NCBI GenBank assembly: GCA_047495785.1 | Contig: JBLDXI010000003.1 | Span: forward strand, 930,001-994,000 | Reading direction: 5' to 3' | DNA from: Lepidodermella squamata | Lineage: Eukaryota > Animalia > Gastrotricha | Length of the DNA: 64,000 bases | Shown here: positions 33,344 to 61,763 of the stretch, one piece after another | Position numbering within the stretch: the first letter of the stretch is position 1 | Layout: every line of letters starts with the position of its first letter | Notes under the pieces: generated by a model | Seen by the model: the letters and a program-made list of their open reading frames with translations, nothing else | Database searches by the model: none | What the model was told of the DNA's origin: nothing | Made by a program: the position numbers and the translations under genes

Positions 33344-34228
33344 ATGTCGGAAATAAGGATGTCCTGGAAAGACGACGTTCGGGTCTTCTCCATCGAAGAA
33401 CGTACCGTGGCAAGTTTGCAAGCAGAAATTCTTCGACAATGGAAATGGAAACTCACAGGGTCGTTTCCACTAGCGATCAAGTACTTTGACGGAAGCTTCT
33501 GGGTTTCGGTCGTGGACGAACAGGCGTTGGCCCGGGCGTTTCGGCTCAGTCCTGACGAGCCTCCTCATTTCAAACTGACCATCGCCGAACCCGAAGAAAA
33601 TGACCTAAACGAGGTAGTCGCAAGGCTAACGTTGAACTCGAGGCCTTCATCGCGGCGCAGCAGCCTAGCAAGTGCGCGGTCCGATCGTTCATCTCGTTCC
33701 TCTGCGCGTTCGTCGGTTAATTCTTCAGCACACTCTTCAGCTCGCTCATCTGTTCATTCTTCAGCCAACAACTCGCGGTCGGCGAGTCCTGATCCCGACG
33801 TGAATCCTGATGCCACTGTGGCGCCCGATAAAACTTTGCTGCCAGGCTGGAACTTTCGACGGACAAGTGTACTGATCGATACCCCGCGTCGCATCCCGAT
33901 TCGCGAGAAAATGGCTATGCTTATTAATGCTGCTCCTGCTCGCCAGACTGGCCCACGTCGGCATCTCTACTTGAAGGTTGGCGTTAACATTTAACATATT
34001 TCATAAAATAATATTTACATTAATGAATATTTAAAGTGCGAACTCGAAGCCTTCGCTGATCTCATTGACGAACACTACGATCGATTTCTCGCGAAAAATA
34101 CATCCGAGCCCGAGCTGGCCAACATAATAATCGAAGCTCACAAGAATTGGACCGACGTGTTTGGAACACGGCCGCTTACTGGCGCAGCGAAAAAATTGAA
34201 AGAACTGATTCTTACATACGTAAATTGA
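33344..34228 (+). CDS. Transposon accessory protein: PB1/ubiquitin-like N-domain, Ser-rich linker, Myb/SANT-like helical C-domain
   Basis: DDVRVF...IKYFDGSFWVSVVDEQALARA...FKLTI resembles PB1; intron ~33976-34036; exon 2 CELEAFADLI...SEP...FGTR...KKLKEL; lies inside the TIRs. Confidence 0.7.
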
Positions 34229-35539
34229 TTAATTTTTTCGCCTGATTCATTTTCGTCTGATAAATAACTTTGGCTATAAATTATATGCGAATGCGTGAAG
34301 ACATCTTTCACAGTAAGCCAAACTTATTATTATCTTAAAATTAACAGTTGATTCATGTATTGGAAATATTATAATTTTTTGCTCTCTTTTCTCGTTATCA
34401 ATTAAATATAAATAAATGAGCGTTGCCATTATTAAGTAATGCCGCTTGTCGTTCTTTTGCATCTCGCCGCAAGTCTTGAACGAATCTACGGACTTATCAT
34501 CTATCACCCCACGGATATAATCGACCATTTAGTTGGCTTATGGAGAATTTTATAATAGCTGTGTGAAATATCAATAAAATCTCTCGAGAAATCTTCGACT
34601 TCTGAAGGCGATGTTCATGTATTTAACTTTTGATCGCTGCCTCTATCTATCTACATGTAACTATGGATTATTCTGGAAAAACTCCTATGTCAAAATACGT
34701 CTTGTCTTTCAGTTATAATTGCAAATACCTCCGTGATGTTGACATTTTGAAACATGTGTTTTATAACGTGAATCTATATTGTTGGATTAACTTACCATAC
34801 TTGCCAGTTGCTTGCAAATTTTTTCACTGATCTTTCTGCTCTAAAAAGGCATTTTTTATTTGATATTTTTTGCATGAATGACTGAGATATTTTTTTCCGA
34901 GTCTTCGCACGTGCCGAGCCAATACGATTATTTTTAATAAAAAATTCGAAATTTGAAAATCGCGGTTTTATTTGAATCAGCCAATGGAAATCTTCGTTTT
35001 TTCGCGCCAAAAAACCTCAAACACAATGATATCAACACGCGACAATCAGCGGTAACCTGAGAGTTCAAAATTCGATAAAAAATGTACCTGAATGCTGAAA
35101 GCTGACTATCTCGAGTTGAATGGAAAAATCGAAATTTTTCAAGGCGAATATGTTTTTTTTAATTCTTAAAAATTTTATTTTCTCAAAATTGCGCTCAGAT
35201 TTTATTACATATTTTTCGTATTTTTCACAGCCATTTTTGCGTTAAATTTTAGAAATAAATTGTTGCCGCAAGGATCATGCGTAAACTGCGAAAGCGCTTT
35301 ATCAAATTGTGTTATCTAGTAATGAACGAGCGACACCAATTACACAGGCAATGCGACCAAGCAGCCGCCAAAATCGATAGCAACAATAATTCACAAAATG
35401 CGCGTTGCGGCGGCCATCAAGTAACAATTAAATAGCGCGGTCCATAAATGTAGTAGCTAGTAATCATCGCTTTCACGCTAGACCGATATGTGAGCGTAAA
35501 CATCACTGGATCGCGATATTTTACAAAATTTCCACCAAA

Positions 35540-38162
35540 ATGTTTCCAAGTTCGTGGACAGAAATTATTTTAAGATTCTTCGCAAACCGGTTATCGCGCA
35601 TCAATTTACCTGCAGTTTTCATCAGTTTACTAATTACGGGAGTTATTTACATTTTAATCATGTCAAATTCACCGTTTGGACTGGTTATGGTGTCAAAAGC
35701 TAGGCGTGATCGAAGCGAAGTGACGAAATTGCCGTCGATAATGCGACCGGTTTTGCCGCATCGCGCGGCTCTTTTCGACAAGGCCATGGCTCAACCATTT
35801 CCCGAGGCGGCTAATTATGACGTGATCGGAAAGGATATGCCATGTCCGTTTCAGAGTAAACGAAAGTGTGAGTGGCCTTTCTTCGCCCAATCCGGTTTTG
35901 GGAAATGGCAGCTTCCTATCATCTGCTGGAGGTCGAAAAACATGTGAGTTTTTAATATAAGCGTCCCTAGTTACGCCCTTAGCGTTGCTAAGGACGCATG
36001 AAGATTCGCAAAGGTCAAGCCTTAATATGGTTAACAGGAAACTGCCCGTAACTAAGGACGCTTGTTTTTGAAATATCCTTAGCAACCTGATTTTGATTCG
36101 TAGACTCGGCCATCTGGTGCCGCAGGAGGCTGAAAATTATCGCGGGCTCCACATTGTGGTAATGCGGCAGGACAATTACTCCAGAGTCGCTTTCCAGCTG
36201 TCCTTTGACACCTTCACATCTGATGAAGAATTGTCCAACTTCCTAATCCACCACGTTGCCATTGGAAACTTACTTATACTAGCTAGCCATGACGACGCTG
36301 TGAGCAATCTACGCCCGTTATCTCGCAATCTATTACGCCATTTCGGCTCGAAAGAGATGGAAAACTTGGCGTTTCGGGATAGCTTCGTGATGGTTGGCGT
36401 GAAAGGGGCTGACCCGGGCCGAGCGATTGAATCCATTCGCCGTAAGAGGATCTCAGAAGAGTTTCCAACTGAAGTCTCAATTCATGGATGTTTCGAGCCT
36501 ACTGAGTGTAAGTTTCGGAAACAGGAATCCAAACTCTTCATTCTCGAGTTTTTAATAGTCGAGCCGATGAAACCCCTACCGTCCGAGCGAGAATTGAGAT
36601 TGGATCGGAGGGAAACTATCAGGAAAGGCATTTGGCCCAACTGCGGCCTTAACGCTGTCTGTTCGCCTGGACACCTCTTTCCAATGCATATCAGGACAGG
36701 GATCATTGAAGCTCCGGGTCCAGAGCTTTGCATAAACAGCCAACTAGTTTTCCATGCCGATTACCACGCAGGCTCGAGAGGCTTCAATCTAGCGATTTAC
36801 GACCCAGAAGAAGGCTTGGTAGTTTCGCACAACTCTTTCGATCCTACAGTGCATGGTAACATTTTTTTAAAGTGGTTTAAAATGTTATACAAAGCGATTC
36901 CAGAGCCCACTAGAATGTTTCAATACCTAGAAACGGTAAAGGCAAACCAAATCCTGTTTGGAGTAATTCACGAGGACGCATCGCAAGATAACGTTTCCGA
37001 GATACTGACGGAAAAATTTGGGGTAAAATTAGGAGCAGAGCTGTACTCGTTTTCCATCGGCTATTTCATCGCCCAACTTGGTTCAACTAATTTGGCCCTC
37101 GAAAGCCTACGGCACTTCTACCCTGGGATTCCTGAGACCACAGAGCCAATGGAGCTATCTACTTGCCTGCCGAAGCAAAGTAAGCAGATCGATCTTTTGA
37201 AATGATAGCATTGTTTTTTCTTCAGTTCGAGGTCTTGCTTTGTCAAAGCACGGTGGAGCAGCGCAAACTGACGAAGGAGCGTCTCTCAAACGCCAGTTTT
37301 GCGAGACCTTTCCGGATCAGTACGGAGAATTATGTGCTCAGCCTTTCCTTCCCTCAAACGAGCGCTCATCGGAAAATGGAGCAACAATCGCTAGCTTGTT
37401 TTCTTTCACGTTTCCTATCATCGTAATGGCTGGCAGCGATCTTCGAGGTCTCGCTAAAACCCTGGAGACAGTTACAGCGAAACAGGTCCCTGTTGAGCTG
37501 GATTTGGCTTTTAAAGTTGTCTGCGCATCAAGTTACATGACCCAAGTTTTTGGCGAGGAAATAGAACAGCTGACAAATCTCTTCGAATTTCGATTATCCC
37601 TCTTAAAATCTGAGAGCTACGACGATTTGTATCGAGATTGTCTGGTCTACGGAGCCGAAACTGCTGAAGTTTTAAAGGTAGAACTTTAGTCAAAAATCAA
37701 ATTATTGAAAATATGTGTTTCCAGGAGGATTGGTTCCTTTTCATCGAGCCAAACGTGCAAATAGCCCCCGACTTCTTACCATTCATCAGGCGGGCGTGGA
37801 ATGCCACGAAGTTGAATAGCTACGCAATTTCTGGTTGGACCAAGGATAGCAATACTTCTGCGTCTTCATCCGACTTAATGACGGCCGCGCATTCCATATT
37901 ACCCTCACCGTGTTTTCTTGTCAGGTATGATTACCTGCTCAAAACAGTGATGCCTCGATACGATGAATGCTGTTCAAGAAGCCGATCATCCAAATGGCCC
38001 GTTTCCACCGGGAATCTAGCCACTATTCCTAGATTTTCGAGATGCTTCAAAGAACCGAATCCTCACAGCTCGTGTCTAGTATCTAATGCGGGCGAGAGTG
38101 AGGCGAATTCATGTTGGGAGAAAATTCAACACCACTCAAACACTTCCCTTAGGGCGTATTAA
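35540..38162 (+). CDS. Second POMGNT1-like gene (ILEI x2 + GT13-like); 3' end uncertain
   Basis: TM segment; FRDSFVMVGVKG; GSRGFNLAIYDP; FIEPNVQIAPDF; SGW; colinear with the 25374 gene. Confidence 0.78.
35959..36063. mobile_element. Small intronic foldback/MITE
   Basis: Inverted repeat AAGCGTCCCTAGTTACG / CGTAACTAAGGACGCTT. Confidence 0.5.
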
Positions 38163-38568
38163 TGAAGTTTATTGAAATTAGAATAATAAAAGAAGGTCAA
38201 GTTATCAGAGATTTGATTGCTGCTTTTTAGCTAGTATCTGCAACAAGGATGCACGCTTGCAGTGGCTGATACTGTGATCCGACATTGTTCTGAGATATTG
38301 AGAAAGAAAATTGACGGAGAAATCAATGATGAAGCAGCACCTCACCCTGGTTTCACCTGTGTCGCAGCCATTCGTAGCAGAATCAGCTATCGTTCCGCCA
38401 GTCACTTGGGTATGACCTCCTCTTGGCCGGCTGTGAGGGAAAGAAAGTAAATTCAAGAAGTTCCCAACTTCGAAAAATTTACCAAAAAAAGCCTGATCCA
38501 GGTCGACAATTGTAGAATACCTAGCCAACATTTTTTAAAGTCGACAAAAGTATATGGTTGTATGTTGT

Positions 38569-41500
38569 TTAGCGAACCGTGTTCGTGCAAGAGGCGGTGT
38601 CTATGTAAATTTGGTACGGGAAGGTATCAGCTGCACCTATCGCTTTAAGCTGGAAAAGACTCAAGGGTTTTTATAATTCCATACAGCGAAATTTCTCACC
38701 GGTGTTCCACTCGAGCAGCCAGTTCGATCCGAGACGCATTTTGCCGTCAGATCTGAGTTTGCAGTGAAGCCAGTTCCGTCGTAGCAGAAGTAGTAGTAAA
38801 TCTGGGTTTCGCAGACCGAGCGAGTCCAAGAGAATCCTGTCGGGCTCTATGAAGCATTCAATGATATCAGAAATTTAAAAGTGATCGTAATCTGTTTTGC
38901 AGCATGCTAACTTCGAGATTAAGCGCGCTCACCCTTGCTTCAACGCCAGCTTTGCAATTGCCGCTGTTGTACGTAACAGGGCGGCACATGGAATACAGAA
39001 AAGTCGTAGTTGACGAGCAACGACCCCAAGTTAACTAAAATAAGGAGAGAGTTTGTAAATTCCCTGTTAATAGACATAAAATCAACTCCAACAGCATTTT
39101 GGGCAGTTTGGCAATCGGTTGTCGAGGCGTAGGATGCAGGATCTGCCGGTAACTGGGAAATCAGTGAGACGGTGAAGACTTTAATATAAGAAAATAAATT
39201 GTTATACCCTTGAGATAGTCGCAGCTGAACCGCAGCCGTTGAAATCGTTGACACAAATGAAAATGTTAGCAGCATCATCGTAACAGGAATAGTATCGCTA
39301 TCACACACCGAATACAAATAGTTTTACAAGCAGCAGAAAATACGCGAAGAAAGTAAGAGGGAGTCTATAAGGTTTGGCGATAGCTAATCTTATAGCATTT
39401 AAAAGTTATATATATATATATATACTATCATGAATAAGCTAAGAACTGCGAGATTGGTGGATGAACATTGAACAAATCCGGAAAAAGAAAATTTACCCGG
39501 GCCAAACGCCGAAAATTACCGAATATAAAATCATGTCTTTCATTATTTGTTGGGGAAATAAAGAACAAATTTTCGAGCGCGGAAGAAAACATCTTTGAAC
39601 TATCATGTTAACAAAATTCTTACCGCATAGCTGTCACAAGCTGATTTTGAGGTGAATGTCGTAGTCGTCTGGTCGGATGGTAACTGAGACGAAATGGGAT
39701 TTTCTAATAAGATGGTGAAATAGGAGAAAGAATGTTCCGAACCGGAGATTCACCGCTAGCACAGTCTGCTCCCCAGGGTGCGCAATATCGTGCCCCGCCC
39801 GCCCCTGTTTGTACGCAGCGTTTCCACTTGTTGTAAGCTGTTAGCGCAGCCTGGCAAGCTGTATAGTCCGCAGGAGCGGCGTCCAACGATGCCTTGCAAG
39901 CAACATTATTTCATGAGTTCAATTGAACATTAGAGTCTTGAAGCTTATTGAAAATGTACCGTTATATCAGTGCCAGTACATGTCGCAACACAAGACATTG
40001 TGTTCGAATTTCGGTAGTAACAGAGCTTGTTGCCATTATTTCCACCCTGAGCAAATATAAGCAAGTTGAAAGCGATTTTCTACTACATATTGCCCATTTA
40101 CTGACCGAATAAGTTTGACAGCTACTCTTTCCGGTTGCTCCTGTGAAAGGAGTCGATGGGTTCTAAAGCATGACGTCGAATAATGTTTTCTATTTGTTCT
40201 ATTTTTATCAGATCCTTACTCTAGCTCCGCCGGTGACGCAGGCAGCTCCGTCTAGTATTCATTGCTAAGCGTAAAAATCAAGTCGTGACACTACTTGAGG
40301 TAAATTACCCGGTCGGCATTTGGCGACACCGCTTTCGACGCAACGATAGTAGGTGGTCTGAACAAATTAGTGAATCTGTAGTGCGTCTTTTGAGGAAATA
40401 TATTTAGTTACTATTGCTGTTCCAGCATTGGTACAAGACGTCAGATCGTTCAGCCATTTATTCCCAGAGGGTAGCTACGGGAAAACCATGATTTCAATCT
40501 TGAATCAATCTAAAACTGAAACTGACCTGAAGTTGGACATCCGTAGTAGTTGCGCAGCCAACTGTGTCGTAGCGGCATTCAAAAGCATTGGCTGAGTAGA
40601 CGTAGCACGAGATGTATTGAACAGCACTTTGGCAATTAGCCAACGAAGTTCCGAAATCTGCTGTTGGATCAGCTGTTTCTCCAGTTATTCCCGTCGGGTT
40701 GCAAGATGTTGGGCGGCATGTCGCTATGTTGGCTTTCAAACATCTCGTTATAACCTAATAGAATCACAGTTTTCGGAGGTTCAAGGTTCAAGGGGTTTAT
40801 ATTCTTACCAATGCGGCACTCGCGGTCTGGCATGTGGTCAGGGTGTCGTAACCAGTAGTTCCAGTGCCCAGCTATTAACAAGGATTCAGCGCATGAAATT
40901 GAAACGTTTTTACCAATCTATACCTTGACAGGACAGTTATCTGTTGTAGTTAAAGCGCTGGGTATACAGCTCCAATAATTGGTCGCAGGTACGTAGCATA
41001 GCAGATAATACTGAAATGAAAAAAATAACCACGAAGGGTAGGTAGTAGATGCTAATCGTGAACTCACATCCCAAGCTAGGCACTGATCTGCAGTTTGAAA
41101 CGTGGTTGTTGGCCGTTGAGTCTCAGAACCTTGACAAGTGCCTTCTGGATTTGGGCGACATCGGGCTGTCGTGCCATCAAGACAACGTCGCCACGCGGGC
41201 TGCATAAGGGGTAATAAGAAACATTATGCTTTCAATGACGATGACAGCTCAGCCTACGTCAGTATAAGCTGCGCAAGATGCTGCAGTAGCAAAAACTCCT
41301 GTTGAGTCAGAAGAAGGTACTTGAATGAAGTTTGCTGTATCACCACATGCGGCATTATCATCTGTGGAGCAGGTGATATCAGTGTCCGCAGCAGGTTTCG
41401 TTGCTGTTGAAGTCGATAGGTAGCACCGTCGTTTTGGCTAGTGAATTTTAGTTAGAATTATTTGAGAATTATGACATCGACTTACAGCGTAACCTGTGCA

Positions 41501-44500
41501 GTCGGAGTAGGATGCGAATTGAAAGCTTGTTGGGCTGGGTCGCTTTATTAAAAAATAATCGAAGATCAAGACGGAAAAACAAAGACGAGATCCTCACGCT
41601 TGAGTAACCAGTCAATCCTGTCGAACAGTCTGTTAGGGGATCATTTGACCCCGATTGATACGGCCGGCAGACAATGGTTGCGGAGACTTTCACGCATCTT
41701 TGCCAAAGAGGCTACGATTGAGCCAGATATAAAACTGAAGTGCGAAATTGAATGGAAACTCACCACAAAATCACTAGACGGGCACGTGGTGAAGTAAACA
41801 TTGTAAGGTATCTGTAATGAGATTTTCACTGATTTTCACGGCTCGGCTTAAATTATTCATCATACATTCTTCAATGGACTCGCGCATTTGTCGTAGTCAT
41901 TGGCGCAAGTAAAGCCAGCCCCTTCAGTGGCAGTGGTCGATGTGGATGTGTCGTAGCATGCTAGAAGGGCAGTATAGGCGTCACACAAGGCGAAAGTCGA
42001 GAAATCAGTTGGTCCGTAAGATCCCTTGAAAAACTTGTTGAAAGACCAGAAGAAGTCTTGATTTCAACTTACGACGACTTCAGTGCTCGGGCAAGTAGTC
42101 TGGGCACCAGTATAGTAAGGCCGGCAATATTTTCCCTTATTGGCATCCGGCGAGTACCGAACACAACGCAGCCATTTGGGCTGCGAAAATCCCATTACAA
42201 TTTCATCTATAAATTAGACATGCCTAATTACCGGAATCCAAGCCGAGCATTGCGAAGTGCTTGTAAAGAAAACATCGTGAGGGAGCTATAAAATGTAAAC
42301 ATGATCCAAATGTATAGGATAAGGTTGTCTCAACCCGTATTGTGTTAGCCGGGCAACCACGTTGAGTATCGGCGATGCATTGAATCGTTGATGGATTCGT
42401 CGTAGTCGTACTAAAACAGCCGTAGTAAGCTGTAAAAGCTTCACACTGGGCCTTCGACGAGAATAGGTAAGGATTGATGCCGTAGGTCGTTGAATCAGAT
42501 AAAGATGGGAACTGGTCCTCGTTACTCAGGCATCCAGCCTCAACTGGTCGACTGCAGAATCCGTTGATGATTGAATTATATAATGATGGAAAACATCTTA
42601 CCAAGTAGCTCTTGGGAAGTCAGTTGCGCCACTTTTTCTTAGACACCTTATCCATGAAGCCGGGGTGTAGGGTGCGCATGCTGTACCAACTGCTGGATTT
42701 ATATTTTCTGATCCGTCTTTTTGTAGAGGGATTCTAGGAATAGGGCTAGAGCCCGATGGATAGGTACATAGATAGTCAGCAACGCATGAGTATGATTCAG
42801 TAGATCCGAATTCGTAGCAGTAAACGCGAGCCTGGTAGGCCGTACAAGCCGCTAGGCTGAAAGCTGTCCCACCGAAAAGCTGAGAAGTCATTTCTCGGTT
42901 AACTAAAGATGCGATTCTTTGGAATTAACTCACTGTAGTTTGGGCTATGTTTGAGGCATCTGAGCATCCAACAGCTGTCACCCGGCAATGAACGGTAGCA
43001 CTGAGGCCCGGATTGTTTAAGCATCGGGACCAAGTAACCGAAGTATCAGCCTCACAAGTGGCTTTTGTATCAGCTAAAACGTTGCCCTTGAAATTTTTCT
43101 GACTAAGACAAGTAGCGTCAAAAGTCGCATCATTATCGGGAAGACAAGTCCTCGCGTTTGGCGTTGATTTGTAGTAGCAATAATGGACAATCTAGGGTAA
43201 TGTTCAGCTTGAGGTAACTTTGAAAAATCGCAAGCCTTACGTATTTATTCGATTCACAGTCCGCTAAAATTGGGTAGGGCACTGTGCTAGGCGACGTGTT
43301 AAGCTGTCCCAACATTTCTTGGTTTGAATAGCTTTCAAAAAAAAGAAAGGTGCTGTCTTACCAAAGTGCTAGTGGTAGTAGGCGAGGCGCTGCAAGATCC
43401 TCCAGGACTTGCCACATCGCGTAGTGGACGGCAGATTACGAGAGTATCACTCATTCGACAACGCACGTGGTTCAGCTAATAAGAAATTTATGTTTCAGCT
43501 TTAATAAATGTTAATAAGGTCTTTTTATTGTTTAAGCTGGAACCTACACTGAACCCTTATTCCAACCGTCTACCTTTTAGTTTTTGCAGTCAAGGTTGAG
43601 TCTAGTCAAATCAACCCGAGTTTACCTTATTGCTAGTGTCGTAAATCAGGTTCGCATTTCCAGTTGTACATCGCGACGCGGCTGCCACTTTAGTAGAATA
43701 TCCAACATACCCAGCGAGCTGTAAACAATTGAAATTTGAATCAAACAGAACATTGATTCAGATCATGCCTACCTCGTAATCAGTGGAGAGGCAACCACCA
43801 TCCAAATCCGTCGGACACTTGAGGGTATAGCTACTAGCTGTGTTGGAGTAGCAAACCTTGGTGTACTGAAAATTTTTGGTGACGTTCAAATCCTTTTCTC
43901 GAAAATGCATTGAAAAACTTGCGTAAAGATTGTTTAGGCAAGCTGTTCGCGAGCTGTACGATGCTGCTACCACTGTCAACTGTGGGAAACCAATAGTAAG
44001 AGCTGAGTGCTATACGGAAAATGTTGTACCAGTGTTTCGACTGGTGAACCCGGAGCCGCAATGCAGGTTGACCCACCAGATATCGATTGCGGACGGCTGC
44101 AAAATGGCTTAAAGATTGAGGTTCAGAAGAATGATGTAAAACCACTCACCAAATGATAATCTGCGCTCCCGTCGCGATATCGCCAGTTGGCCCGGATCCA
44201 CATCGGATGTGCACGAGCTAAAATTTAAATTTGATACTCCGCCGCTTAACGCTTCATAGAGCTACATACCGCTTCTCCGGCTGTTGTCACCGCAAGTGAA
44301 GGTGTAGAGGTGAAGTAATAGTTATTGGCCTGATTTTGTAGCGTAGAATCCAAAGCACTGCCAAAGAAATGTTGACTGATTTGAAAGGCTCCTGTGGGAC
44401 ATCCGGCTGTGAAATCTGTCGCATAGGCCACGGTCGAGAAAAAAGGGTCATTGGTTGTCGTAGAAGGGGTGTAACATGCTTTCACAGCCTTCAGAACTCA

Positions 44501-46194
44501 GGAATGTTAGGATAAGAGGCCCTGAATTGTTGGAAGCCTTACATATCGATTATTGTTGCAATGCAGAAGTGAGACAAAAGACGCCGATGTTAAAGGAGCC
44601 GAAATACCCATCTGCAACAAAGTTAGGTAAAAAGAAGCTACGTTGTCATAAACATGATCGCTACCTCAGTCTCTCCTACAACTTTTCCCGGTGAGTTGCA
44701 ACCTGATGTCGCGATCCCCACCAGTTTTGGCCGGCAAATCACCAAGTTACTCGCCGAGACACCACATCTAACATGATTTATCTTCAAAATCGAAAACGTC
44801 ATGGTTTGTTTGATAATTTTCAAAGAAACTTACAGAGGCGGTTTGAGAGTACTTTGCAATGCACGTAGCGTCAGTTGTAGATTGTGTGGCTGTCGTTCCA
44901 ACGACATAGGTCGCTGAGAGCAAGTAACCGTTGGTCCCACATTGCCCGCTCAAAGTATCAGAAGCCGAGGTAACTGAATAGTAATTACTCCCGGAAACTT
45001 GAGTAGCGGTGTAACAAGTTCGGCAAGCGTAGTAGGCATCACAGTCTGCTTTCGACGTGAAGGGAGCAATTGGAAAAGGGCTTTCGGATGGGGTTACACA
45101 AGCAGTTGAAGATGTATCCGCTGTCAATGCTACTGCGCTTGTATCTGAGGTGTTCGAGTCAGCAAAAGTGACAGTTTCCGCCGGACGGCAAGTTGGCGAA
45201 GCGTAGCCATCAGCTGCAGTTCCAGTCACGCACCGAACATGAGTACCCGGTTCGTAGGTTGAGCAATCGCTGGGCGCTAGGGTGTTTGAGACCTGAACTT
45301 CAGTTGTAGTCGAACAGCGGATTAAATCTGAAATGCAACGGTAGGCTGAGTTTGTTTTTGAATAGCAACGAATTTGGCCGTTGAAGGCCTCGCACTGCGA
45401 TTTGTCAACCCAAACTGATGCGGTATCTACGGGTGGTTGGCGCATCTCGGTGGCTTGACAACCGATTTTCGTGCTTGACGCAGTCTGGGGCCGGCAATAT
45501 CGGCCAGTCGAGTTTAGACAGCGATAAACTGGTTTCTGAGGAAATCTCAATTACACGATGATATTAAGATGATAAAATTCACTTACAGCGATATAAGCCA
45601 AACAATTTGCTACTGACGTGAAATATGTGTCCGCATCAGGGTATCGATAATCCGACCCTGAAGTACTAAGACAACCAGGAATATCGCTTTTACACTGAAA
45701 ATCGGTGAGCATTGCGACGAAAATTAATATGAAAAATGAATACTCACTGTGTAGGCATTGCTCAGCGAGTTGTAGCACATTACGTAAGATGTGTAGTTGT
45801 TACATTCGATGAGAGTGCCCCAAGTTACGTCCGATGGTTTCTAAATAAGCAACTTTTCATAAATGCATTTATTAATTGAATACTACTCTTGTTTCGCCAG
45901 CAATGCAGCCAGTTGTCCGGCAGATTCGAACGCTGTTAGCGTCACATCGATAATATGGCCCCTGCGAGTGTTCCATTGAGAAATGGGTATTAAATAATTT
46001 AGACAAGCTCAAACCGGTGGAGGGGCCAGGTTTATTTTGTCGAGATCAGGGATAGCATTGTCAAGATTGCCCGGAGAGCATGCCTCGATCACGGCCACAA
46101 TGGCTATAATATTTCAAATCAAACGTTGTCAGGTACCTTGGATTTTCAACTAACCTAGAAGTGAGACTAAAATTGATAGTTCCCTCTTGAACAT
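38569..46194 (-). CDS. Very large secreted Cys/Thr/Ser-rich repeat protein, dozens of short exons
   Basis: Signal MFKRELSILVSLL|AIVAVIEA; recurring RC..CRP..C..P..C..Y..CY..C..D..GC units in many minus-strand ORF fragments separated by ~45-55 bp introns; stop at 38569. Confidence 0.75.
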
Positions 46195-49134: not shown

Positions 49135-49934
49135 TCTCGCAGAAAGTTGGTTATTTTATGAGTGGGATGAAAGTATGTTATGGACGAATCCTGCGACGGC
49201 TTTTATAGGCCTCTAGTCCATTAGTGAACAAAAAACTTGTTTTGACTGCATTATTGGCGTGGGAACGAGTCAGGTATTTTTCCACACATATTATAACCAA
49301 GTAGATAACATGTTTTCATGACACCCCACCCGCCCAGTGATTATAATGGAAACTCGATTACCTAGATCAAGACAGGTCTCAGATTAATTTTTGATGATTC
49401 AGGATCAAAGAGCGAAGTCCGAATTTAGCTATTCGAGTAAATGTGAATGCATCAAAGATTTGAATAACGAACTAGGATTTTCTCAAATTTGTCGCCAAAT
49501 GTTCCAGTTGGGAAAAACTACTGCTATTTTGAAAGGTTGTGCGCCTTGATTATTTTCCGGAGCGTTTCGAAAGTATTAAAATAAAATGAAAAATTGAACA
49601 AGTTGACTCTTTGATGACAGCACATAATTCATGATAAACCTTTTTCATCGAGGCCATTCAGAATGAGAAACGGCGACCTTTTCGCACTTTTCAGATTCCT
49701 CCTATTCAAAAAGAAATGAGTCAGAGCGCTTTTTCTTAATTCTCCTACCGTTAAGAGAAGACGTCTGTTTTGAAGTTTGAAGAAACCCTCGTGGTTTGTT
49801 AGTTCGCCTCACATCTGTTACTCGCAAAAGCACAAACAGTTGACACCTTGCTGTTTGACCTCAGCAGCAATACAGGAAGTTATCTTCACGTTATCTTATC
49901 TAGCATAGCCCGAGGGCTCGTTAAGCCAAGTGAA

Positions 49935-51113
49935 ATGACAATTTACAAAACGGGGTCATTATTTGCAGTGGCGTTGATCGCCGCTGCTTATGGCTCTTGG
50001 CCAGCAGATTGGATGGCAGCTCTACCTGAGAAGGTAGTGAACGATGTGCCCTTGGTTCAACTGTCTCTACCAGGTAGCTTATAGGAATTTCCTACAAGAT
50101 TGCGTAGTCTCAAACCATTTTGCAGGGTCCCACGATTCCTTCACCTACAACCTATCAGGGTCAATAGCCCCGCCAATCGTGATCAAATGGGCCAAGACTC
50201 AAAATTGGAATGTCACAGCGTGAGTCAATACTAAACTCCCTTAAATCCCTTTGTTGACAGACCAACTGAACTCCTCAGGCAACTCAATGGAGGGATTCGA
50301 TATTTCGACTTGAGAATCTATATGGATCATCAGGGCGTGTTCCGCTTCTGCCACGGCGATATCCACGGAGGTTTAGCAGTCTTACCCACCCTGCAACTGG
50401 TCAAAGACTTCCTAAACCAACATACGGGCGAATTCGTCATTCTCCACTTCCAAGCTTTCGAAAAAATCGACCTGAATAACCATCGCATCTTAATATCTTC
50501 TGTCGTCAACCTTTTCGGAACGATCGCTGTGGCGAGGTGTGACTACGGTGGTGTCATACAGAATGTGACTCTGGGCGATGTTCGAAGGGCAGGCCAGCGA
50601 GTTTTTCTCGTCTCCTACGACCCAATGACCGCTCAAGTTGATAAATGCACGTTTTGGAACTCAACAGCACTCACTAATCCTTACTATCCTACTACTCAAG
50701 TGGAAACCATGGCTGATACCCTGGCGAGTGAGTTACGCAATCGAACTGAAGCGGTCGACCCTCCTAATCAGTTCTTCGTTTATCAATCGGTTTGTTAGGA
50801 TTTAGCTTGATTTTCAGGATTTATACGGCTGATTTTTCAGGTTTTAACGCCGGATGCTGATTACATAATCCACCACTTAGGTGGTTCCCTCGAGAAATTA
50901 GCACTTCCGGCTACGGATTACGTTGCTAGCCAGTGGATTCCGCTGAAGGTTCGAGGCGACTGCCGAAATGCCGGCTACCTTAACATCGTTATGTGTGATT
51001 TTGTTGACAATTATGACTTCGCAACTCAAGTCGCGCTTGCCAATTGGAATTTTACGACATGCCCGCAAGAAAAAGAAGACATTCCATTCATTCACTTCGT
51101 TCCAATGGTTTGA
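49935..51113 (+). CDS. PI-PLC X-domain (PLCXD-like) protein with a predicted signal peptide, 4 exons
   Basis: LPG|SHDS, KWAKTQ, QLNGGIRYFDLR, CHG, NIVMCDFV motifs. Confidence 0.9.
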
Positions 51114-52111
51114 AATCAAATTTCGACTGAATTTTTAAAATAAAATTTTTATTGCGGTTGAAATAATTTTAATCCTTTTGCACCTTGCGTAATATTGCGC
51201 GCGCGCCCAGACGCGATAAATGACCTAATTACGGACAACGAGCGGCAAAAGTGCGCACAAGTGCTAATTATAGGCGCACTTCATACACACGCAATAACTG
51301 TCAAATAAAATGAGTGTAGCTGTTATATTGTTTATCCCCGCCCATCTTCTCGGCTGTTGTTTTAACAGCCGCAACTCACTCGGCTGTTATTATCGCGGCC
51401 CCATACGCGGTTTGAAATTCGGCCGTTTTATTGCTACTCCTCTTATTTAGACACTTGGACGGCTTTTATTACCCTAGCAAATACATAGAATTTGCTGATT
51501 TTCGCATCTACGTTAGGCCCTATTGCCAATGATGTGAGTTGAGGATTTTCCATAGCTATTTTTTATAAATTCAAGGTAATTGTTTACTTAATTTTTAATT
51601 TCAGTAGCCATTTTAAAATTGATATAGCCTGAGGTTTTTGTTATCTCTTGCTATCATGCGGCCGTATCTTTGAGGTCTGTTTCGACATGCGAGAGAGCTG
51701 TCCTCATTATTATTATTATGGCGCGTTATCTCGCCATGGTGACATGTCGCATGTAGGTCACGCGGTTGTCGAACGAGCGTAATAGCCCTGCGCCGGATGT
51801 AAAGAAAGAGGTTGTAAGACTAGAAACAGACCTTAGTCTGAGTACTTCATAACTCTAATATGATAGCAGCTAAAATTCTACTTAAGTTTTTGAAAATTAA
51901 ATACATTTTTTAAATTTTTAATCAATTGAATTATTTAAATTTATATTCGTGAACTCTGAAAAGATGAGTGTCGGGAACTCATATTCTCCCGGAAAATATG
52001 CTAATATTTGGAAATTTTAACCATTAGGCATTTGCACCTGTCTCTATTGAGGTATACTCGTATAGCCCGTGTCGTATCATTTTTTTGTCATCTTACTATG
52101 CATACTAATAA

Positions 52112-53817
52112 GAGGGAAATTTTGTGCGTCGACCAGATTGACCACTTTGTAGACCAACCGCGCGCGCACTTGTAGACCAATATGCGCGCGCGTCGACCAA
52201 AATGAGTGCGCGTGTAGACCAAAATTAGGGCGTGTGTAGACCAAGTAAATACAAGCCGTAAATAGGAGCCAACTATTTATTTTCGCAATTTTTGCAACGA
52301 CAAGCGGTACATTTTTGATTAACAACGAAGCAAGAGCATTTTCGACCCTTGCCAACTCGATTAACACAATTTTTGAAAGCTACGACGAGTTGAAAAACAA
52401 CTGGCTACCTGGTTCATGCGAGGAATCCCAGGCTTTCCTTGGTAATAGGGACCCATTTTTTTGGCAACGAGGCGCGAGTAGAGAAGAGGTTGTTACGTTG
52501 AACCTATATTGTTGTGCTACCGGAGGGCGTCGGCGTAAAAATGTTTTCTCGACTTGGATGCTAGATCATTTTTTTCTAAATTATGCGAATAGTTTAATAG
52601 AAGATAGCGGCCCGGCGGTCGACGGCAGACCGTCATAACAGCAAATACCCAAAACAGCATACGCGACAAAACAGCAGAAACACGATTCATCTTTTACATA
52701 GTAAGTTTTCGCTGTTTTGTCGCGAAATAAAAAATATGCTGTTTTGTCGCATTCGCTGTTCTGCGAAGTTGCTGTTTTGTCGCCGTACCCGGTCGACGCA
52801 TCTTTCAATTCCGATCACTTGAAATTAGTCCTATAATAATATCGCAAATTGCTGATTTCTTAAAAAATCCTAGGATAAGTTTTAGCTATTTTGATTTGTT
52901 GTTGCAGTTGTAGGTAGCGCGTTCATGCGGCGACCCAGTTCAATGACCGGACACGGTCCGTAGCTCTTATTCACGCAGCTAAACCGGCGTGTAAACACTC
53001 CAATACAGATAATCCCTTGATCCGTCGGCTGTAAAACACGGCAAACTGTCTCAGACGTCGCGCGGGGGTGCGTGTCGAGGTGCGCAGCGGGTGCGTGCGT
53101 GTGCGCGTGTTGTTTGAAGATTGGATGAAATGGGTGGATTGCGCGTGATTGGTGCAATAAATGCGTTGCGAATCAGCTGCTTAACTTGATCATTAAGTGT
53201 GGACACTGCTGCTGATTTCGCTGGTGAGCAATCGACTTAGTGAAAACGACAACGGCTGACGGTGTTTCGACTGTTTTCAACTGGTTGCGGCACACGCTTC
53301 TGCCCGCACAATCGCAATAGCAGTAGGCTTCTGTCATGCCATTTCGCCAATTATTTGCCTTCAGGAAATCAGGCCTCGGAATCTTTGTTATAATATATGC
53401 CTATAAACAAACCCCAATGGTGTGGGGTTTGTTTATAGGCCAACTCGTCCGCCTCGACTATCTGCTTGACGATTGCCTCTAAACAATCAGCCTCCTCATC
53501 AACCTGATTTTCTATAGCCTCGGCGGTAAAAGGCTCCTCGGCCGATTTTTCACTGGATAGCTCTTCGCCTGATAGCTCAAAGGATAATTGAAGGTTTAAA
53601 ATCGTCAAAGGCATCGAAATTAGCCAAAATTAGCCGATATACACGTTGGTCTACAATTAAATTTTTGAATGGTCTACAATTTAACAGTTTGGTCGACAAG
53701 TGTGCGTGCTGGTCTACAGCTGTTGCGTTTGGTCTGCGCGCGCACCCTTTTGGTCTACGCACCACCTTGAGTGGTCTACAATTGTGCGTAATCTGGTCTA
53801 CAAATTTTTCAAGCCCT
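52112..53817. mobile_element. hAT-like non-autonomous element
   Basis: 8-bp direct repeat ACTAATAA at 52104-11 and 53818-25; AGGG/CCCT termini; TAGACCA arrays at the left end and TGGTCTA arrays at the right end. Confidence 0.75.
52624..52789. mobile_element. Nested Merlin/MULE-like MITE
   Basis: GG...CC termini; 8-bp TSD CGGTCGAC; inverted CGACAAAACAGC repeats. Confidence 0.7.
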
Positions 53818-55108
53818 ACTAATAAACATGCTGATACGCACAGAGATGGCCGCGGCAATATGTTTTACGCACGTGTTTTTTTCTGCTCTCTTTTACTCTG
53901 ATTTTACTATGCATAGCACTCTGACGTATAGCGACCTGTGATAATATATTTATTTACCCAACTGTTCACTATGACTCGTCACCGTCGTAAGGAATTCGCC
54001 CGGTTTATGCAAATTATTAACCATTTTTTTTCAAAAAATTCCACCTCGATGATTGTGGACAAATTAATTTTTTAAATCCAATTTTGTAGGCTGCGTATTA
54101 TTCGTGATTTTTTTCACTCAAATTGTCATATATTAATTTACGCTGAATTTTTTTTTCACGCTCATTGAATATTTCCAGCCACAACAATAATAACAAAAGG
54201 CTAACAACAAACGATTAACGAGCAAGTACATTTGTCTCGCCTTAGTCACGCGCCCAAACTGGTGAGATATTACGAAAAATCAACTATACACTACGTATAG
54301 TCCACGCTTAAAGTTTGAGCATGCTTATAATAATTGATGAATAATATTATTATAGCCGCCTTTGTGTCACATGCCTGCCATTTTACAAGGTAATTATTTT
54401 TTTAGCTAGTAAACTTGACCTATGCGGCATGCTTTAACAGTCAATTATTCTTTCATTACCACGTCATTTTTTTTATGAATTAATCCGAAAATTGCGATTT
54501 AGGAAATATCCAGTTTTTTTAAATAATTCTTTTGAAAAAATATTGAGCTATATTCTGCCACATTTTTCTTTGCTGTTTTATGAGAAATTTCTCGACTATT
54601 TTTTGTCTATTTTTTCCATTGAGCTTTTCTTCCCATTGCAGGCCAATTATCTTTTCACGCCTCAGACAGCTGTACACATAGTACTATTCACATTGGCAGC
54701 CTCCTTTCATCGCTTTTTATCTCTCCTTAAGATAAGGAATTCCATAAACAGGAAGTATTATCATTCTACTATAGATATTACTAAAATTCTATAATTATTT
54801 ATTATTTCAATAGAAAGCCGTAACTTCGGGCGAATTCAGAGCCCACTGATTTCTTTTTTTCGAGCATTTTCTTAGCAATGATTCATCAGCGCGTGCGAAT
54901 TTTTTGCAGGAGAACTTTTTTATTCCTTATTCAAGACGATTTTTCTTGATTATTTTTAGATTTTTTCCTGGCATTTGTTGAAAATTCCGATTTGTTACAT
55001 GGAATAATTTAAACTCCGCCGCGCTCAAGGCGGGTCAAATTTCGCTCGAGAAAACCGCTGATCCAGAAAAATTTGATTTCTTTTATTTTCAAATTTTCCG
55101 AAAAAATC

Positions 55109-58100
55109 ATGTCGATCGATGTTAACGCTACTTCTGCCGTGGCGGCTCAGCCGACTACAACCCTGCTGCATTTCGAACAATCCGGCCTGTCGAAAGTCAT
55201 TGAAGAATCGGCTCGGCTTAATTTAGCCTCGGGTGACTACGCGCCCAGTGAACAGCCACTGCTAGCGGCGGGTGCTGATGCCGGTGATGATTGGCCGATG
55301 ATTTTCGGCTCATCGACTACAACCACGTTAGCCCCGCCGCCGCCGCCGACTACGACGATTAAGCCGGATATTATCGTTGGATTTGTCTTTCTAGGCCTGT
55401 CTGGCCTGCTTCTGCTCAGTATTATCGCTGTTTGTATCTACGTACAACGGCCGTGCAAAAAGTAGGATTTAATTTTTTTTATTTTAAATTGAGAAAAAAT
55501 TGGAATTTAATTTTTATGAATTTATTCAGAAGTTTTAAAATTCAAATCTCATGTTTAATTTTAAAATTCCAAGATTTTTCATTTATTTCCTAAAATTTGA
55601 AACTATTAAATCGAATATAATAAAAATTTGAAAGTCTTGATTTTTTCTAAAATTTTCGACAAATTATAATTTTTTTTATAATTTTTTTCAATTTTTTTTT
55701 AAGGCCTTTTTTATTAATTTAGACTGGTCCGAATTTACCGCCACCGGGAGCGGAAGAAAATGTTGACGAAAATGGGCGTCGATGAAATTCACGATTTGCA
55801 GTACGATGCTGGTTTCATTCCGAAAACTGCTAAACCCAATTTCAGACGCCACAGGTAAGCTGCTGGATTAATCGCAGTTTTTTGTATTTTATCAAATATG
55901 GGCGTTTACTTATTTTTTGCTTATTTATAATACATTTTTAAGTGGTTCGAATCCGCAGGCGAGAAGGTAAAACATATACGTGCCTTGGAATGCAATTTTT
56001 TAGGGTATTTTTGTGCTTTGGTTAATGGCTGTTGCTTGGGTTACGGATCCTGGATCCGGTAGTTGGCCGTAAATATATGAAATAGTTTCGGCAATTAAAA
56101 CTAACATTTATCATTTAGAAGAAAAATTTGGAAAATAGTCGTCGTCTGTTGCTTGGAACTAATAGAGAAATTCCGTATTTTCCCAGCGCAAATTCAGACT
56201 ATTTTTGGTTACCTGAACCTTGAAAACCTTTTCGTGAATAATTTCTCGTAGCTGAATGTAGTAACCGAAATGACTGACAACACAAAACGATCTATTTCTC
56301 CGGAGGTGAACCGCCTATAGATTATTCGCGATTTCATTAAAAATTCATTAAATAAATCGAGAAAATCCCGTAAAAACCGAATGGAGTCTGGTTTGGTAAT
56401 TATCAGTATTTTACCGGGTTGGATCAAATCGGGTGTGACTTTTTTCATCCGACCATGTCATATTTCATCTGACAACCAAAAATGTGACTAAAATCATCCG
56501 ACATGGAAATATTAATTTTCTCGATTTTCCCGAGTTCGATTTTTCCGTAGGGGCATACCCCTTTTATGCACCCTATTTTGCCCTCCGAACCCGTATAATT
56601 TTATGGTGAAAGATTTATGGCGATCTGAATAGTCACCTTTTTACTGGAATCTTTTTAAAATATGAGAAAGCAAGTCGGTAGGTTTTAGTCTAATTTTTGG
56701 TTGTCGGATGAAATAAGAAATTAGTCGGATGAAAAAAGTTTTCCCCCAAATTTTTACGTGTTTAAATGGGGTCCCCCAGAGAGTAGCAGGCTTCAAATAA
56801 AGCAGAGAGCAACAAATGGTGCACATTTCAGACCAAATGGCTTCAAAGCACTCCCATAAAAAAAGTAAAATAAAGTATTAAGCAATGATCACCATGTTTT
56901 GGAATTAATGCTATTATTTTACTTTGAAGCCATTTTTTAATTTTGCTTCGAGGTCATGGTGCTTTGAAGCCTGTTACTAAATTTTCCCTACTTCGTAGGG
57001 GACCCGTTTAAATCTACTTCATCGCCTTTCTTTTCGATGTACTTCATCAATAGGTTGCCTTACTTATAGGACACCTTGAAAGTGCTAAGAGTAAAATATA
57101 CTTGAACACTTGAACCTGAAGTAATTTGAAATATCCCATTTTGTACGCTGGAAAATTTCTCACCTCGAAAATGGGCTATTAGGACTAACTACTAGCCGCT
57201 GGCTGATCTAGAATTCTCATGTTGTATAGCCTTCAATTTGAATTTTTCACTAAAAATTTCACAATTACGACTAAAAATTGAATTTTTCAGTTTAAAATCT
57301 GTAAATTGTTTAAATTGTTGTAATACTCAATTTAGGCGTCGGATTACTAATACATTTGTCACGCGAAATACATTTATTGATAGATTTTTTTACGTTTCAA
57401 TGTAGCTGTCTGTTACTCTCAATTACAGTGCAGACTTTTTTTCGAAAAATTTGTTTTCCAACTTGCTAAAATTCGATACTTGTATAATCGATACTTGAAA
57501 TCGATATCGGCTCTGCAGAGTGATTTAGAGAATATTGAGATTCTAGAGAATACGTGAAACTAGAAATTGCCTAATATGGGGAAATATTGAGTCGGAGCCT
57601 CGAATTAAAGGCGCCCATTCGCCCGACTCTATATTTTAATTTCATTACATTAAATTTTCGAATTCCAGTAAAATGTAGATAATTTTAAAGAGGAATAAAT
57701 TTATTCTCCACGATTTCGGAAGGGTTTCTTGTGTTATTACTGGTTACTAAAATTAATTACTGCAGTGTTTTATTTTGTCATTTTTTCAATTTTTCAGCCG
57801 GCTCATCAGTCAGCATTTCGATACAATAATCGACCTCGACCCGGACTACCAGCACCCGCACTTGCAGTACTACAAGCAGCACGCAGCGCTCATTGCAGCT
57901 AAGCGCATCACGGCGAAATCGCGGCTGCGAGGCCGCTGGTCGCAGGGTGAGTCGGGCGCGGGGCCCGTTTCGGGCGCCCAGCCCAGCTCGCTCATCCACC
58001 CGCGCACGCACACGCTATCGACCGGGCGGCCTAGCATTGAAGAGCCGTTGATTTCTGAGCAAGTTCACGGCGGGTCGTTGCCGGTGTTCACAGATGACCA

Positions 58101-59925
58101 GCCGCGGCGGTTGAGTCACCCTGGTGCTTACGACTCGCTGCCGGTGCCGGGTGACAGCGATGCGGCTCTGCTGACGATGACTACGGAGGTGGACGGTGAC
58201 AAATTGTTGTCAAATCAGGTATTTTAACAACATTGCCAATTTTCTGACTCGGGAATTTGAAATTATTTAAAATTTAAAAATGTTTGAATTTCCCATATTT
58301 GGAAATTTTTTGAATTTATAAAAAATTCGGAAATGTTTGAAATTTTAGAAAATTCTAATTATTTCAACTGCGAGAAATAATCGCCGAAAATTAGCTCTGG
58401 ACCAAATTCAGTAACTCGATGGTGAAACCCCCAATTCCAATGTAGTTTGACCCGTTTATGAATTTGCGGATTTCAATAATCAGTTTGACCCATAAGTTGC
58501 AAAATTCTTATTCGTAATGAATTTTCTTTCAATTTTTATTTTCAAAAATTAAATGTGATTGAATTTTTCTAAATGTTCCTATTAGACCGTTCTCAAGTGA
58601 AAAGTGGGATATGGCGAATTTTCTGTATTTTCCAGCAAATCGCAAAAGAGGGACGATTTTTGAATTTTCCAGATGTTCAGGCTATCTTGAGAATTTTCAA
58701 TTTTTTCAATTTCGGACTTCTCAAAGGCTCCATTCCTACTACAAATACGGGAAATTCGAAACTGTCGCCGAAAAGCTAATCGATTAGGGTTTAAGTAGCG
58801 GCACTAGCTTGATTCTGCCAAAATTTTAGATTATCTAGCAAGGTTCCTCACCTCAGACTACCACAAAAAGATTTCAAATAACGCATGAAAAAAAGAATTT
58901 GATTTTTAATTGATGCAATAAAAGGCTAAATTTTTTCAAGTGCGACCCTGCAGCCCATTTGATGCCGATTTTCAATGCAACCGTGATGACTGTCAACCTC
59001 TGTTTAATATCGTTTGACGATCGTTAATTTACCTTGAGAGTGGCATAAAAATCTCACAATATCCAAAAAATCTCGCCAAACCCCACTTTTCACTTTTTAA
59101 TAATGAAATAATTTTCTGGTCTAAGTTTTGTGGAGCCGAAAGTTGGGCAAGCAAATTGTGAACAATTATTTCGCCCAACAATGCCTTTTCAAAATGTTCG
59201 GGAATTTTTCGAATTAATTAAATTTAGTTAATACACCACGAAATTCTCGGGAATTTTCAGTGTAACGCCTAGTTCTGGTTCAACCGGGTAAAATACCGAA
59301 ATTACCGAACCGGTTACCATCGAGGTTTTCCGGGTTTTCTCCGTTCAATTTTTTATTTCTTCGGTTAAATCGAGGATGAAAGATGTAATATTCTCTAGGT
59401 AGGTTTAAAATTCAAAAAAATAGTTGAATTTCCTACGAAAAGTTGCCAAATCAACAAAGTTGCACAATTTCTGGGTATGTAATCAATTTTTTAAATTTTT
59501 TTATCAATTCCTTCTAGGCCAGTGGAAGTCGGCTGGGCGATGACGAGTACGAAGACAACCGCGGTTCGCTGTCCTCGGCGACAATGGGCGTTGAGAGCGT
59601 GTCGAAAAACACGCCTCAATCCGTTGTCCTGCAGGAGATGATCGCGAAAAGCCGTGCGGCGTCGATTTCGCGCGCCTCGGGCGAAAGCCACCCGCCCGTG
59701 CCTCTGCTACCTCGGCGCAGCCTGGCGCACCAAATGTCCGAGCAGCAACAGGTGGGCCGGTTCCGCGTTTCGCTGCCTATGCGGCGGCCGTCGTCCGGCG
59801 CCGAGCTCACGGGCCTTCATAATAGTAATAGCAACAACCACCTCGACGTCCGGCAGCCTATGCCTCGGTCTTCCAGCGGCGGCAAACAGTCGACAATAGC
59901 GGAAAACGCGTCGGATAAATACTAG
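55109..59925 (+). CDS. Single-pass membrane protein with disordered cytoplasmic tail (4 exons), unknown family
   Basis: GC-rich exons at ~55109-55461, 55723-55855, 57798-58218 and 59518-59925 in AT-rich introns; TM IIVGFVFLGLSGLLLLSIIAVCIYV after a Thr/Pro stalk. Confidence 0.75.
56431..56747. mobile_element. Intronic MITE
   Basis: Inverted repeats ACTTTTTTCATCCGAC / GTCGGATGAAAAAAGT with repeated subterminal ATCCGAC. Confidence 0.65.
56762..57011. mobile_element. Intronic foldback MITE flanked by TTAA
   Basis: TTAAATGGGGTCCCC / GGGGACCCGTTTAA; nested CAGGCTTCAAA / TTTGAAGCCTG. Confidence 0.6.
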
Positions 59926-60817
59926 TTGCATAAATCGCGAAATAATACCCTACTTCATAGCCTACAACATGCAATTTACATTTTTTATGTTACAGAGAAA
60001 TGATATTTGAATGAAAAATTGATACCAGAAAAAGCCGTTTGAGATGAACAACAAATTTAATCATGATTACATGAATCTTTATTCTGTGGTTTTTTTTGAG
60101 AAAAAGTAAATGAGAATGGATGTCTTTGTTTGTTTTGTTTTCGAGTTTTGTCTTCTCAGCGGCCAGCGGACCAGTGTTTCGGAATACAGTGATAATCAAA
60201 AAATCGGCACGGTGGAGTTGAAATGCTGCAAAACGGACCAAAATGGCGCCCTTTTCGCTAGCTCCAAAGATAGCTCCAGTGAATAGTTTCAAGAATATAT
60301 TCATGAGATGTCTTGAAACTAGGACATTCTTACTTACGTGCCAAAAATCGCAGAAAAATTTGAGCGGTTGGAATAAGGTTACTGCAAATCAAAAATAATT
60401 TTTTCGGAATTTTTCTCGCATAATTAATAACTTAGAGGGATTCGGAATATTAATTAGCATATTACGAATATTTCGGTATTTTTCGGCACATCTTCCGCAA
60501 AAGTACTCCACAACTACCGCAAAACTACCGCAAAGAAAAAAAATGAAAAAAGTGATCAGACTCATATTTACCTGCAGCAAAATTTATTATTTATCAATTA
60601 ATATGAACAAATACAATGATCGCTCTTGATTTCCATCAAAAAAGAAATAAAAATTTTTTTTTCAAGGTTTATGGCGCGTTACGGTTAGAGCCCTCGTGTA
60701 GCCGGTTTCACCAGATTGGTTTATACAATGTGTCTTTAGGTGGAAACTCATCCTGATTACTCGTGTCCCGCATTCCCGCATCATTGCGTGTCTTTTGTTA
60801 CGTAAATAGGTGTTTTT

Positions 60818-61719
60818 ATGGCTAAAATCTATTGTGTGGTGTCTTCGGAGGCGAACCCACCGCGATTGATTGAGATCGCGGAGAACCAAAAGCATGCCGA
60901 ATTGATTGCAGCACTCCGAACTAATTTGCTACCGAAAGAAACGTCGATAGAACTTTATTACGATGTAAGTTCAATCTTTTTTCATTGTGTCGCACTCATT
61001 TCGATGCTTATCAATCTTAAATTTAAGCTGGACGAAAAGACGGACGTGCTGATTGCTACCGATGAGTGCGTAAGTAGAGTGATCAGAATGCACTTGGTAT
61101 TTCGTCCCAAGGAGCCGGCCTACTTTTACATTCTACCCGCTACAGCTAAAACGGACGAGAATCCAATCATACGCCCCCCGCTTGCATCAAGTTCAACCTC
61201 TAGCTCACCAACTGGCTTGAATATGGGGCCATTGAAGACACCAAAGCCGCAATCAACGTTGTCATTGTCACGGAAGCGCCTTTTTGAAACAAAGAAGGTC
61301 CGCTTTGAGGAAAGTGAAGACGAAGATGAAGACGATCCCCCGAGCTATAAGTAAGATATCGATTCGTCTACGGAAAGACTGGTTACTCAATGTCTTTTAC
61401 ACTCAGATATCACAGCAGATTTGCTACTCCATGCAGGTAGGCCTGTCCATTTGAACATTTAGAATGTAGGTATATGTTGTTATCAATTAGGAGATTGACT
61501 CGCAAACGATTCAAAACTTCGTTTAAGGGACGGCCCGGCGATTATTCCCCGGCGGAAGAAGATTGCTGCCAAGCGATCGCCGAATGGCTGAATAAGAAGC
61601 GCAAAGATTTATCGGAACCACATTTTTTTGAGGCGATGGCGGCCTTAAAGGTCGATTTCGAAGAGACGTTTGGCACTAGAAAAGTGGCCAACATCATCAA
61701 AAAGATGAGCGATCTGTAA
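60818..61719 (+). CDS. PB1-like + Ser-rich + Myb/SANT-like protein, homologue of the 33344 gene; may be spliced to the downstream recombinase
   Basis: Three in-frame introns; C-domain SEP-x16-FGTR-x6-KK colinear with the 33344 protein. Confidence 0.7.
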
Positions 61720-61763
61720 ACTTCGCATTTGTTGACACCTGTTGATTCCTTTTCCATTTTAGG

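Follow-up and report, generated by a model that had tools for sequence, protein, structure and literature searches.

Whether one and the same accessory protein can accompany both a DDE transposase and a tyrosine recombinase is the question raised by a stretch of 64,000 nucleotides from the gastrotrich Lepidodermella squamata (GenBank assembly GCA_047495785.1, contig JBLDXI010000003.1, positions 930,001 to 994,000 of the forward strand). The whole of this stretch is called the window here; its open reading frames are sparse, its G+C content is ~41%, and its GT..AG introns are short (47-140 bases). The original prediction paired two peptides, which are located at 34103-34207 (+) and 61612-61716 (+); both genes concerned are small and spliced, with the peptide in the final exon. 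These genes and their products are designated helper 1 and helper 2, and their coordinates are collected in Table 1. With a probability of roughly 0.6, we consider that both genes belong to a single rare family encoding transposon helpers, in which a beta-grasp head is joined by a disordered, Ser-rich linker to a three-helix tail that ends the protein. The helper family has two old branches. A-type helpers, represented by helper 1, lie head to head with a DDE transposase of the CMC (CACTA/Mirage/Chapaev) type inside terminal inverted repeats, and B-type helpers, represented by helper 2, precede a recombinase-like gene by 35-110 bases, and the product of that gene starts with a second PB1-like domain. 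The predicted occurrence of the same helper with two enzyme types is upheld by the homology of the C-terminal domains (hhalign probability 92-94%), by the different kinds of enzyme, and by the recurrence of both pairings.

Regarding the C-terminal domains, sequence comparison indicates that the three-helix tails of helper 1 and helper 2 are homologous. In one single pairwise BLASTP comparison, the C-terminal exons aligned without gaps at 11/38 identical residues with an E value of 5e-5, and the tail exons of both helpers each recover their own relatives in the genome. Alignment of hidden Markov models (HMMs) had been proposed as a check of the relationship. A helper-1-type profile (4 sequences) aligned to a helper-2-type profile (8 sequences) with hhalign gave a probability of 91.8-93.7% and a score of 35.5-38.1, whereas 300 column shuffles, a lenient null model, averaged 8.5 and never exceeded 14.6, and the reversed profile scored 10.6. 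When the alignment was repeated with eight outside proteins alone, a probability of 69% (P 4.4e-5) was obtained over 55 columns spanning all three helices. The motif F/W-x-D/E-x-F-G-x-R-x6-K-K-L/M-x2-L terminates the protein in both helper types, the order of parts is identical in both, and the alignment is colinear.

Helper 1 is carried by a two-gene element whose boundaries (30090-30093 and 35028-35032) were taken from copy alignments, an inverted-repeat scan having failed to reveal the ends. Three full copies are 98.5-98.8% identical, and a fourth, older copy is 95-96% identical. In the three copies, 2/825 sites of the helper 1 coding sequence are variable, both silent, versus 34/1583 non-coding sites (Fisher p 6e-5), a pattern indicating that helper 1 belongs inside the element and is constrained. 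A diverged family on contig 6 (L032) retains the head-to-head pair; there the helper is 33-36% and the transposase 41-80% identical. The core exon of the transposase matches Pfam Transposase_21 (CACTA tnp2) with an E value of 1.5e-4 and 21.5 bits, below the cut-off of 28.6, and its translation carries ...CDYPMLV...G...ACIFC, with a C(2)C motif downstream of the second catalytic Asp. The element begins and ends in CATT...AATG, i.e., CA..TG, and the window copy, a single insertion with both flanks read and no empty site seen, shows an apparent 2-bp duplication (AT/AT). CMC transposons are characterized by 5'-CA..TG-3' termini, a target duplication of 2-5 bp and a C(2)C motif that follows the second catalytic Asp (PMC12730594). 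Because of the sub-threshold tnp2 match, the C(2)C motif, the CA..TG termini and the apparent 2-bp duplication, the element looks CMC-like rather than Transib-like. The RAG-like character claimed in the original prediction was set aside, considering that Transib duplicates 5 bp and that a phmmer search of all PDB chains with the 231-residue core exon returned no RAG1 or Transib match. A tblastn search of a phage collection with the transposase core returned nothing. On contig 32, a tandem pair of A-type tail exons (L024:7290-7514 and 7709-7945) stands between large TPR-repeat genes with no transposase nearby; these exons could be relics or a host-captured copy.

As for helper 2, its stop codon is separated from the enzyme gene by only 44 bases (61720-61763), a gap that is short for two transcription units. 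Helper 2 might then form the N terminus of a single long recombinase protein made by splicing, in which case a free gene would have been compared with a fused domain, and a 47-nt intron (GTAAAC...TTTTAG, 61716-61762) would indeed join the frames of the window copy in phase. However, no frame-keeping intron across the helper stop is possible in four other families (L033, L034, L029 and L054). In all five families the stop directly follows the tail and the next frame begins with a Met whose ATG lies behind a pyrimidine-rich AG at a distance of 0-12 bases (0-2 in most). The eight retrieved outside proteins likewise all end at most nine residues past the tail domain, six of them at most three. This junction comparison led us to abandon an assignment of helper 2 to the recombinase gene as its N-terminal exons, and a fused protein is considered improbable; most likely, judging from the junctions, helper 2 is a protein of its own, encoded 44 bases upstream of the enzyme gene. 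The spacer (61720-61763, and L033:2228-2284 in a paralogue) contains a conserved motif, GACACCTGTTG, of which the paralogue has two copies. This motif and the spacing between AG and ATG might point to operon-like units with trans-splicing.

The pair of helper and recombinase-like gene recurs in at least three further families of the genome (L033, L034 and L029) and is complete on at least two outside contigs, L054 and L055, while a third, L056, carries a helper (P0011), then a beta-grasp-like start, and then ends. On L056 (3274-4938, minus strand) and L057, which are metagenome contigs of the same locus, a transposase gene of the Mutator-like element (MULE) type is located ~1 kb upstream of P0011 in divergent orientation; it may be a chance neighbour or another partner. 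The enzyme of the window had been called a tyrosine recombinase. The order of motifs fits this identity and is what it rests on: IRPG, VHVKGQK, FTDFRQ, MQHR and GRQYY (the last exon) were read in the alignment in the usual order, with one residue of the tetrad replaced (the His position in FTDFRQ is Thr or Asn). Pfam searches with the core exons of four families gave no match (no Phage_integrase or DUF3504), and the PDB profile search with the core was blank, so that the designation is weakened to recombinase-like here. One recombinase-like family on contig 42 (L028:7649-7861 and 8003-8299) has two tandem tails, followed by a KH-like region (Pfam KH_PARP14_6, E 0.017) and a zinc finger.

The helper probably also accompanies a third element type (L036, at least 8 copies), which shows the same helper layout and, after it, a gene whose zinc-finger leader is related. 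This leader (L036:2284-2661) resembles window positions 61951-62306 of the recombinase-like gene (tblastn E 0.001), and the pattern G-[RK]-F...K...G-x-[GR]-R-x-C-x-x-C-x-K...L-x-[RK]-H-L was read by eye in both. The L036 core is nearest to DUF7869 clusters in a protein atlas (score 0.90), some of which also have a DDE transposase domain, a lead only. A genome search with the tail profile, another of the checks proposed, found 36 places, and pairs of helpers with transposase or recombinase-like genes recur. The family is rare: of 1.84 billion proteins, only 9 matched the tail profile at E <=0.001, and the proteins searched yielded no host-gene relatives. The helper has no Pfam family. At curated scores, Pfam matched neither helper, none of the tail exons or heads, and none of the recombinase-like exons, and a word search with helper 1 exon 1 scored 0/2996 candidates.

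Several observations weigh against a single helper family. In addition to the leniency of the column shuffling, single-family HMMs at genome scale do not cross the helper types (E 2.5 in one direction, nothing in the other). The N-terminal heads are only weakly linked in sequence: BLASTP gave an E value of 0.15, exon-wise profiles of the helper 2 head reached <1% against helper 1, and a profile broadened with two intron-free paralogues reached 25-54% in a colinear alignment of 72 columns that scored 24-28, the highest shuffle reaching 15.4. The structural model, which covers the helper 1 head alone, has a strand-strand-helix-strand-strand-helix-strand order (E2-8, E11-17, H22-33, E41-48, E51-56, H59-62, E76-80) at a low mean predicted local distance difference test (pLDDT) value of 59.6. 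Its top Foldseek and VIA rows are nearly all ubiquitin-like, PB1, SUMO or DIX. The VIA Z scores were 5.3 for a ubiquitin-like protein, 4.9 for a PB1 complex (4mjs) and 4.0-4.6 for SUMO and DIX, and were taken as tied (within 1 unit). The head of helper 1 is modelled, at low confidence, as a beta-grasp in which PB1 is indistinguishable from other ubiquitin-like folds. Pfam PB1 (PF00564) matches neither helper head, and it appears below threshold on the enzyme's own head in two relatives, L029 (E 5.2e-4, 20.4 bits, cut-off 23.6) and P0002 (E 0.012). Of the shared PB1-like domain in the original prediction, a beta-grasp for helper 1 is retained at this confidence, and PB1 in particular is not. 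For the tail, a model built on helper 2 and an alignment of 13 sequences has a pLDDT of ~88 over residues 18-75 and shows three main helices and one short helix; its fold scores are low and tied. Foldseek gave no match with E below 0.9, and VIA gave Z 3.5-4.6 for TetR helix-turn-helix domains, homeodomains, GT-1, TRF1 Myb, Zeste and CENP-B alike. A DNA-binding helix-turn-helix-like fold is plausible on this model. The Myb/SANT comparison made earlier is given up in view of these ties and of the Pfam result, as all tail exons matched nothing, including Myb, SANT and MADF profiles; the PDB profile search with a 12-sequence tail alignment was also blank. Finally, no PB1-like partner domain is evident in the translated frames of the CMC transposase, and the recombinase-like element of the window is a single copy (no second copy at the DNA level) with an enzyme that Pfam and PDB searches do not recognise.

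Some of these points speak for convergence, by which the two helpers would share only a common small helix-turn-helix fold, taken independently from host genes, and would have arrived at the same order of parts separately. The HMM-versus-sequence searches that do not join the types and the weak link of the heads favour this explanation, as do the intron positions and phases, which differ between the two genes and give no support for their common descent. The Ser-rich linker, offered as evidence in the original prediction, is present in both helpers, but it is of low complexity and carries no weight for kinship. Convergence is nevertheless unlikely: the tail profile score stands well above every shuffle, it was repeated with an independent outside set, a common motif terminates the protein in both types, and the 1.84 billion proteins searched yielded no host-gene relatives.

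The helper 2 frame in the original prediction ran through the first intron of that gene because this intron is in frame. The two N-terminal halves of helper 2 correspond to two separate matches in the paralogue L033/L049 (L033 on contig 11), and the spliced models were searched exon by exon. In both helper genes, an AG is located 8-17 bases 5' of the ATG. The miniature element listed in Table 1 has at least 40 copies elsewhere in the genome, which are 95-100% identical, with matches on both strands.

Table 1. Features of the window, numbered from its first letter, and further genomic matches of the tail profile
Feature	Position	Strand	Remarks
Helper 1 exon 1	33344-33976	+	N-terminal beta-grasp-like domain (~33344-33600), Ser/Arg-rich linker, conserved segment
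Helper 1 intron	33977-34036	+	GT..AG, 60 nt, phase 0
Helper 1 exon 2	34037-34228	+	Three-helix C-terminal domain; coding to 34225, then stop codon
Helper 2 exon 1a	60818-60964	+	N-terminal domain, first half
Helper 2 first intron	60965-61027	+	In frame
Helper 2 exon 1b	61028-61350	+	N-terminal domain, second half; Ser-rich linker; acidic tract
Helper 2 last exon	61491-61719	+	Basic leader, three-helix C-terminal domain; coding to 61716, stop TAA 61717-61719
Two-gene cut-and-paste element, CMC-like, 4.9 kb	30093-35028		Minus-strand transposase head to head with plus-strand helper 1
Left terminal inverted repeat CATTATGTTTTAGGTT	30093-30108	+	14/16 match to right end; followed by subterminal block common to right end
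Right terminal inverted repeat (reverse complement CATTGTGTTTGAGGTT)	35013-35028	-	Flanks AT/element/AT
Transposase gene, several exons	30836-32821	-	Open frames 32408-32821, 31454-32146, 30836-31276
Recombinase-like gene	61764 to past window end 64000 (~L022:4349)	+	ATG 61764; own beta-grasp (PB1-like) domain, C2H2-like zinc finger, recombinase-like core
Palindromic miniature element, 301 bp	63552-63852		In last intron of recombinase-like gene
Open frame with two ILEI (FAM3-type) domains	36093-37202	+	Pfam E 8.9e-25; directly right of 4.9-kb element; probably an ordinary host gene
Further genomic tail-profile matches	C4:2864997, C7:2071676, C42:1712374, C34:7628, C31:305885, C105:138326, C25:692619, C15:847490

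Concerning the function of the helper, the domain anatomy and the matching head on the recombinase-like enzymes suggest that it most likely assembles the enzyme on the element. The three-helix tail would bind the element's own end sequences, and the beta-grasp head would dock either on other helper molecules or on the enzyme, in the recombinase elements through PB1 domains paired head to head; in this way the helper would bring the enzyme and both element ends together. Such a cofactor would work with any cutting chemistry, and its occurrence on unrelated elements would thereby be accounted for. A stronger proposal, that the helper is an enzyme-independent portable cofactor which assembles the cutting complex through polymerisation or beta-grasp pairing, which DDE and tyrosine-recombinase-like enzymes alike require and which has moved between element classes, is doubtful enough to be offered tentatively. 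The helper does occur on mechanistically unrelated elements, as the original prediction of an exchanged module implied; the exchange itself we infer, and because the helper types are ~20% identical to each other, any sharing must be old and its direction and date are unreadable.

The helpers might also be selfish cargo acting on the host, for example as chromatin-tethering factors or as the anti-silencing factors suggested in the original prediction, instead of cofactors of transposition. Diverse transposons are known to carry accessory genes that target host marks, TET/JBP in fungi being one example (PMC12730594), and the lack of a PB1-like partner domain in the CMC transposase frames would suit such a role. 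The recombinase-like enzymes, however, bear a matching beta-grasp head right beside the helper gene, which suits docking between helper and enzyme better, and no sequence feature of the helpers indicates chromatin activity; selfish cargo is very improbable. If, on the contrary, the role of the helper is to recruit the enzyme to the element ends or to assemble it there, complex assembly and end recognition would be supplied by a portable protein, independently of the catalytic mechanism. This would bear on the origin of new transposon types and on the design of programmable transposition tools. As the helper family is nearly absent from public protein data, it also provides a new domain family to describe.

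Small non-catalytic proteins encoded beside a transposase include the Harbinger Myb-like protein and En/Spm TnpA, which are thought to bind the ends and to recruit or assemble the enzyme. The helper resembles them in being a small non-catalytic protein encoded beside a transposase, whereas no sequence or Pfam relationship to them was found, and the helper has a beta-grasp head and also occurs with a recombinase-like enzyme. In flowering plants, PB1-MULEs are DNA transposons that carry a PB1 domain, which is distributed patchily across related families (Joly-Lopez et al. 2016, PMC4948706), and a PB1-like beta-grasp carried by DNA transposons would be common to both systems. The plant PB1, however, is found on MULE elements only and is recognised by the conserved-domain database, while the helper is a separate gene with a three-helix tail, is not recognised by Pfam, and stands beside CMC, recombinase-like and a third type of enzyme in an animal-like genome.

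Accessories on unrelated transposon lineages have been described as well, namely the TET/JBP dioxygenase in fungal elements (PMC12730594) and the C48/Ulp1 peptidase in Cryptons and MULEs (PMC3212892, PMC4948706), for which domain shuffling or repeated capture was proposed (PMC12730594, PMC3212892, PMC4948706). One accessory gene type on mechanistically different elements is also what is seen here. These shared accessories of the cited literature are enzymes of known families, in contrast to the helper, which is small and non-catalytic, without a catalytic motif or a named family, and which joins DDE elements with recombinase-like elements. Cryptons have a low copy number, introns, extra DNA-binding domains and domain shuffling between groups (Kojima and Jurka 2011, PMC3212892). 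The helper 2 element is similar in its low copy number, its introns, its additional putative DNA-binding domains, which are part of the recombinase or adjacent to it, and in that no reverse transcriptase was seen; it differs in that the window enzyme has no DUF3504, Phage_integrase or GCR1_C match and in that a helper gene and a PB1-like head are not part of the Crypton description (PMC3212892). Shared accessory parts on transposons are therefore of a known kind, whereas the helper module and its span across element classes, covering two DNA-cutting chemistries and probably a third element type in one genome, are new as far as the literature was searched, and the helper looks like a swappable transposon part rather than a part of one enzyme type.

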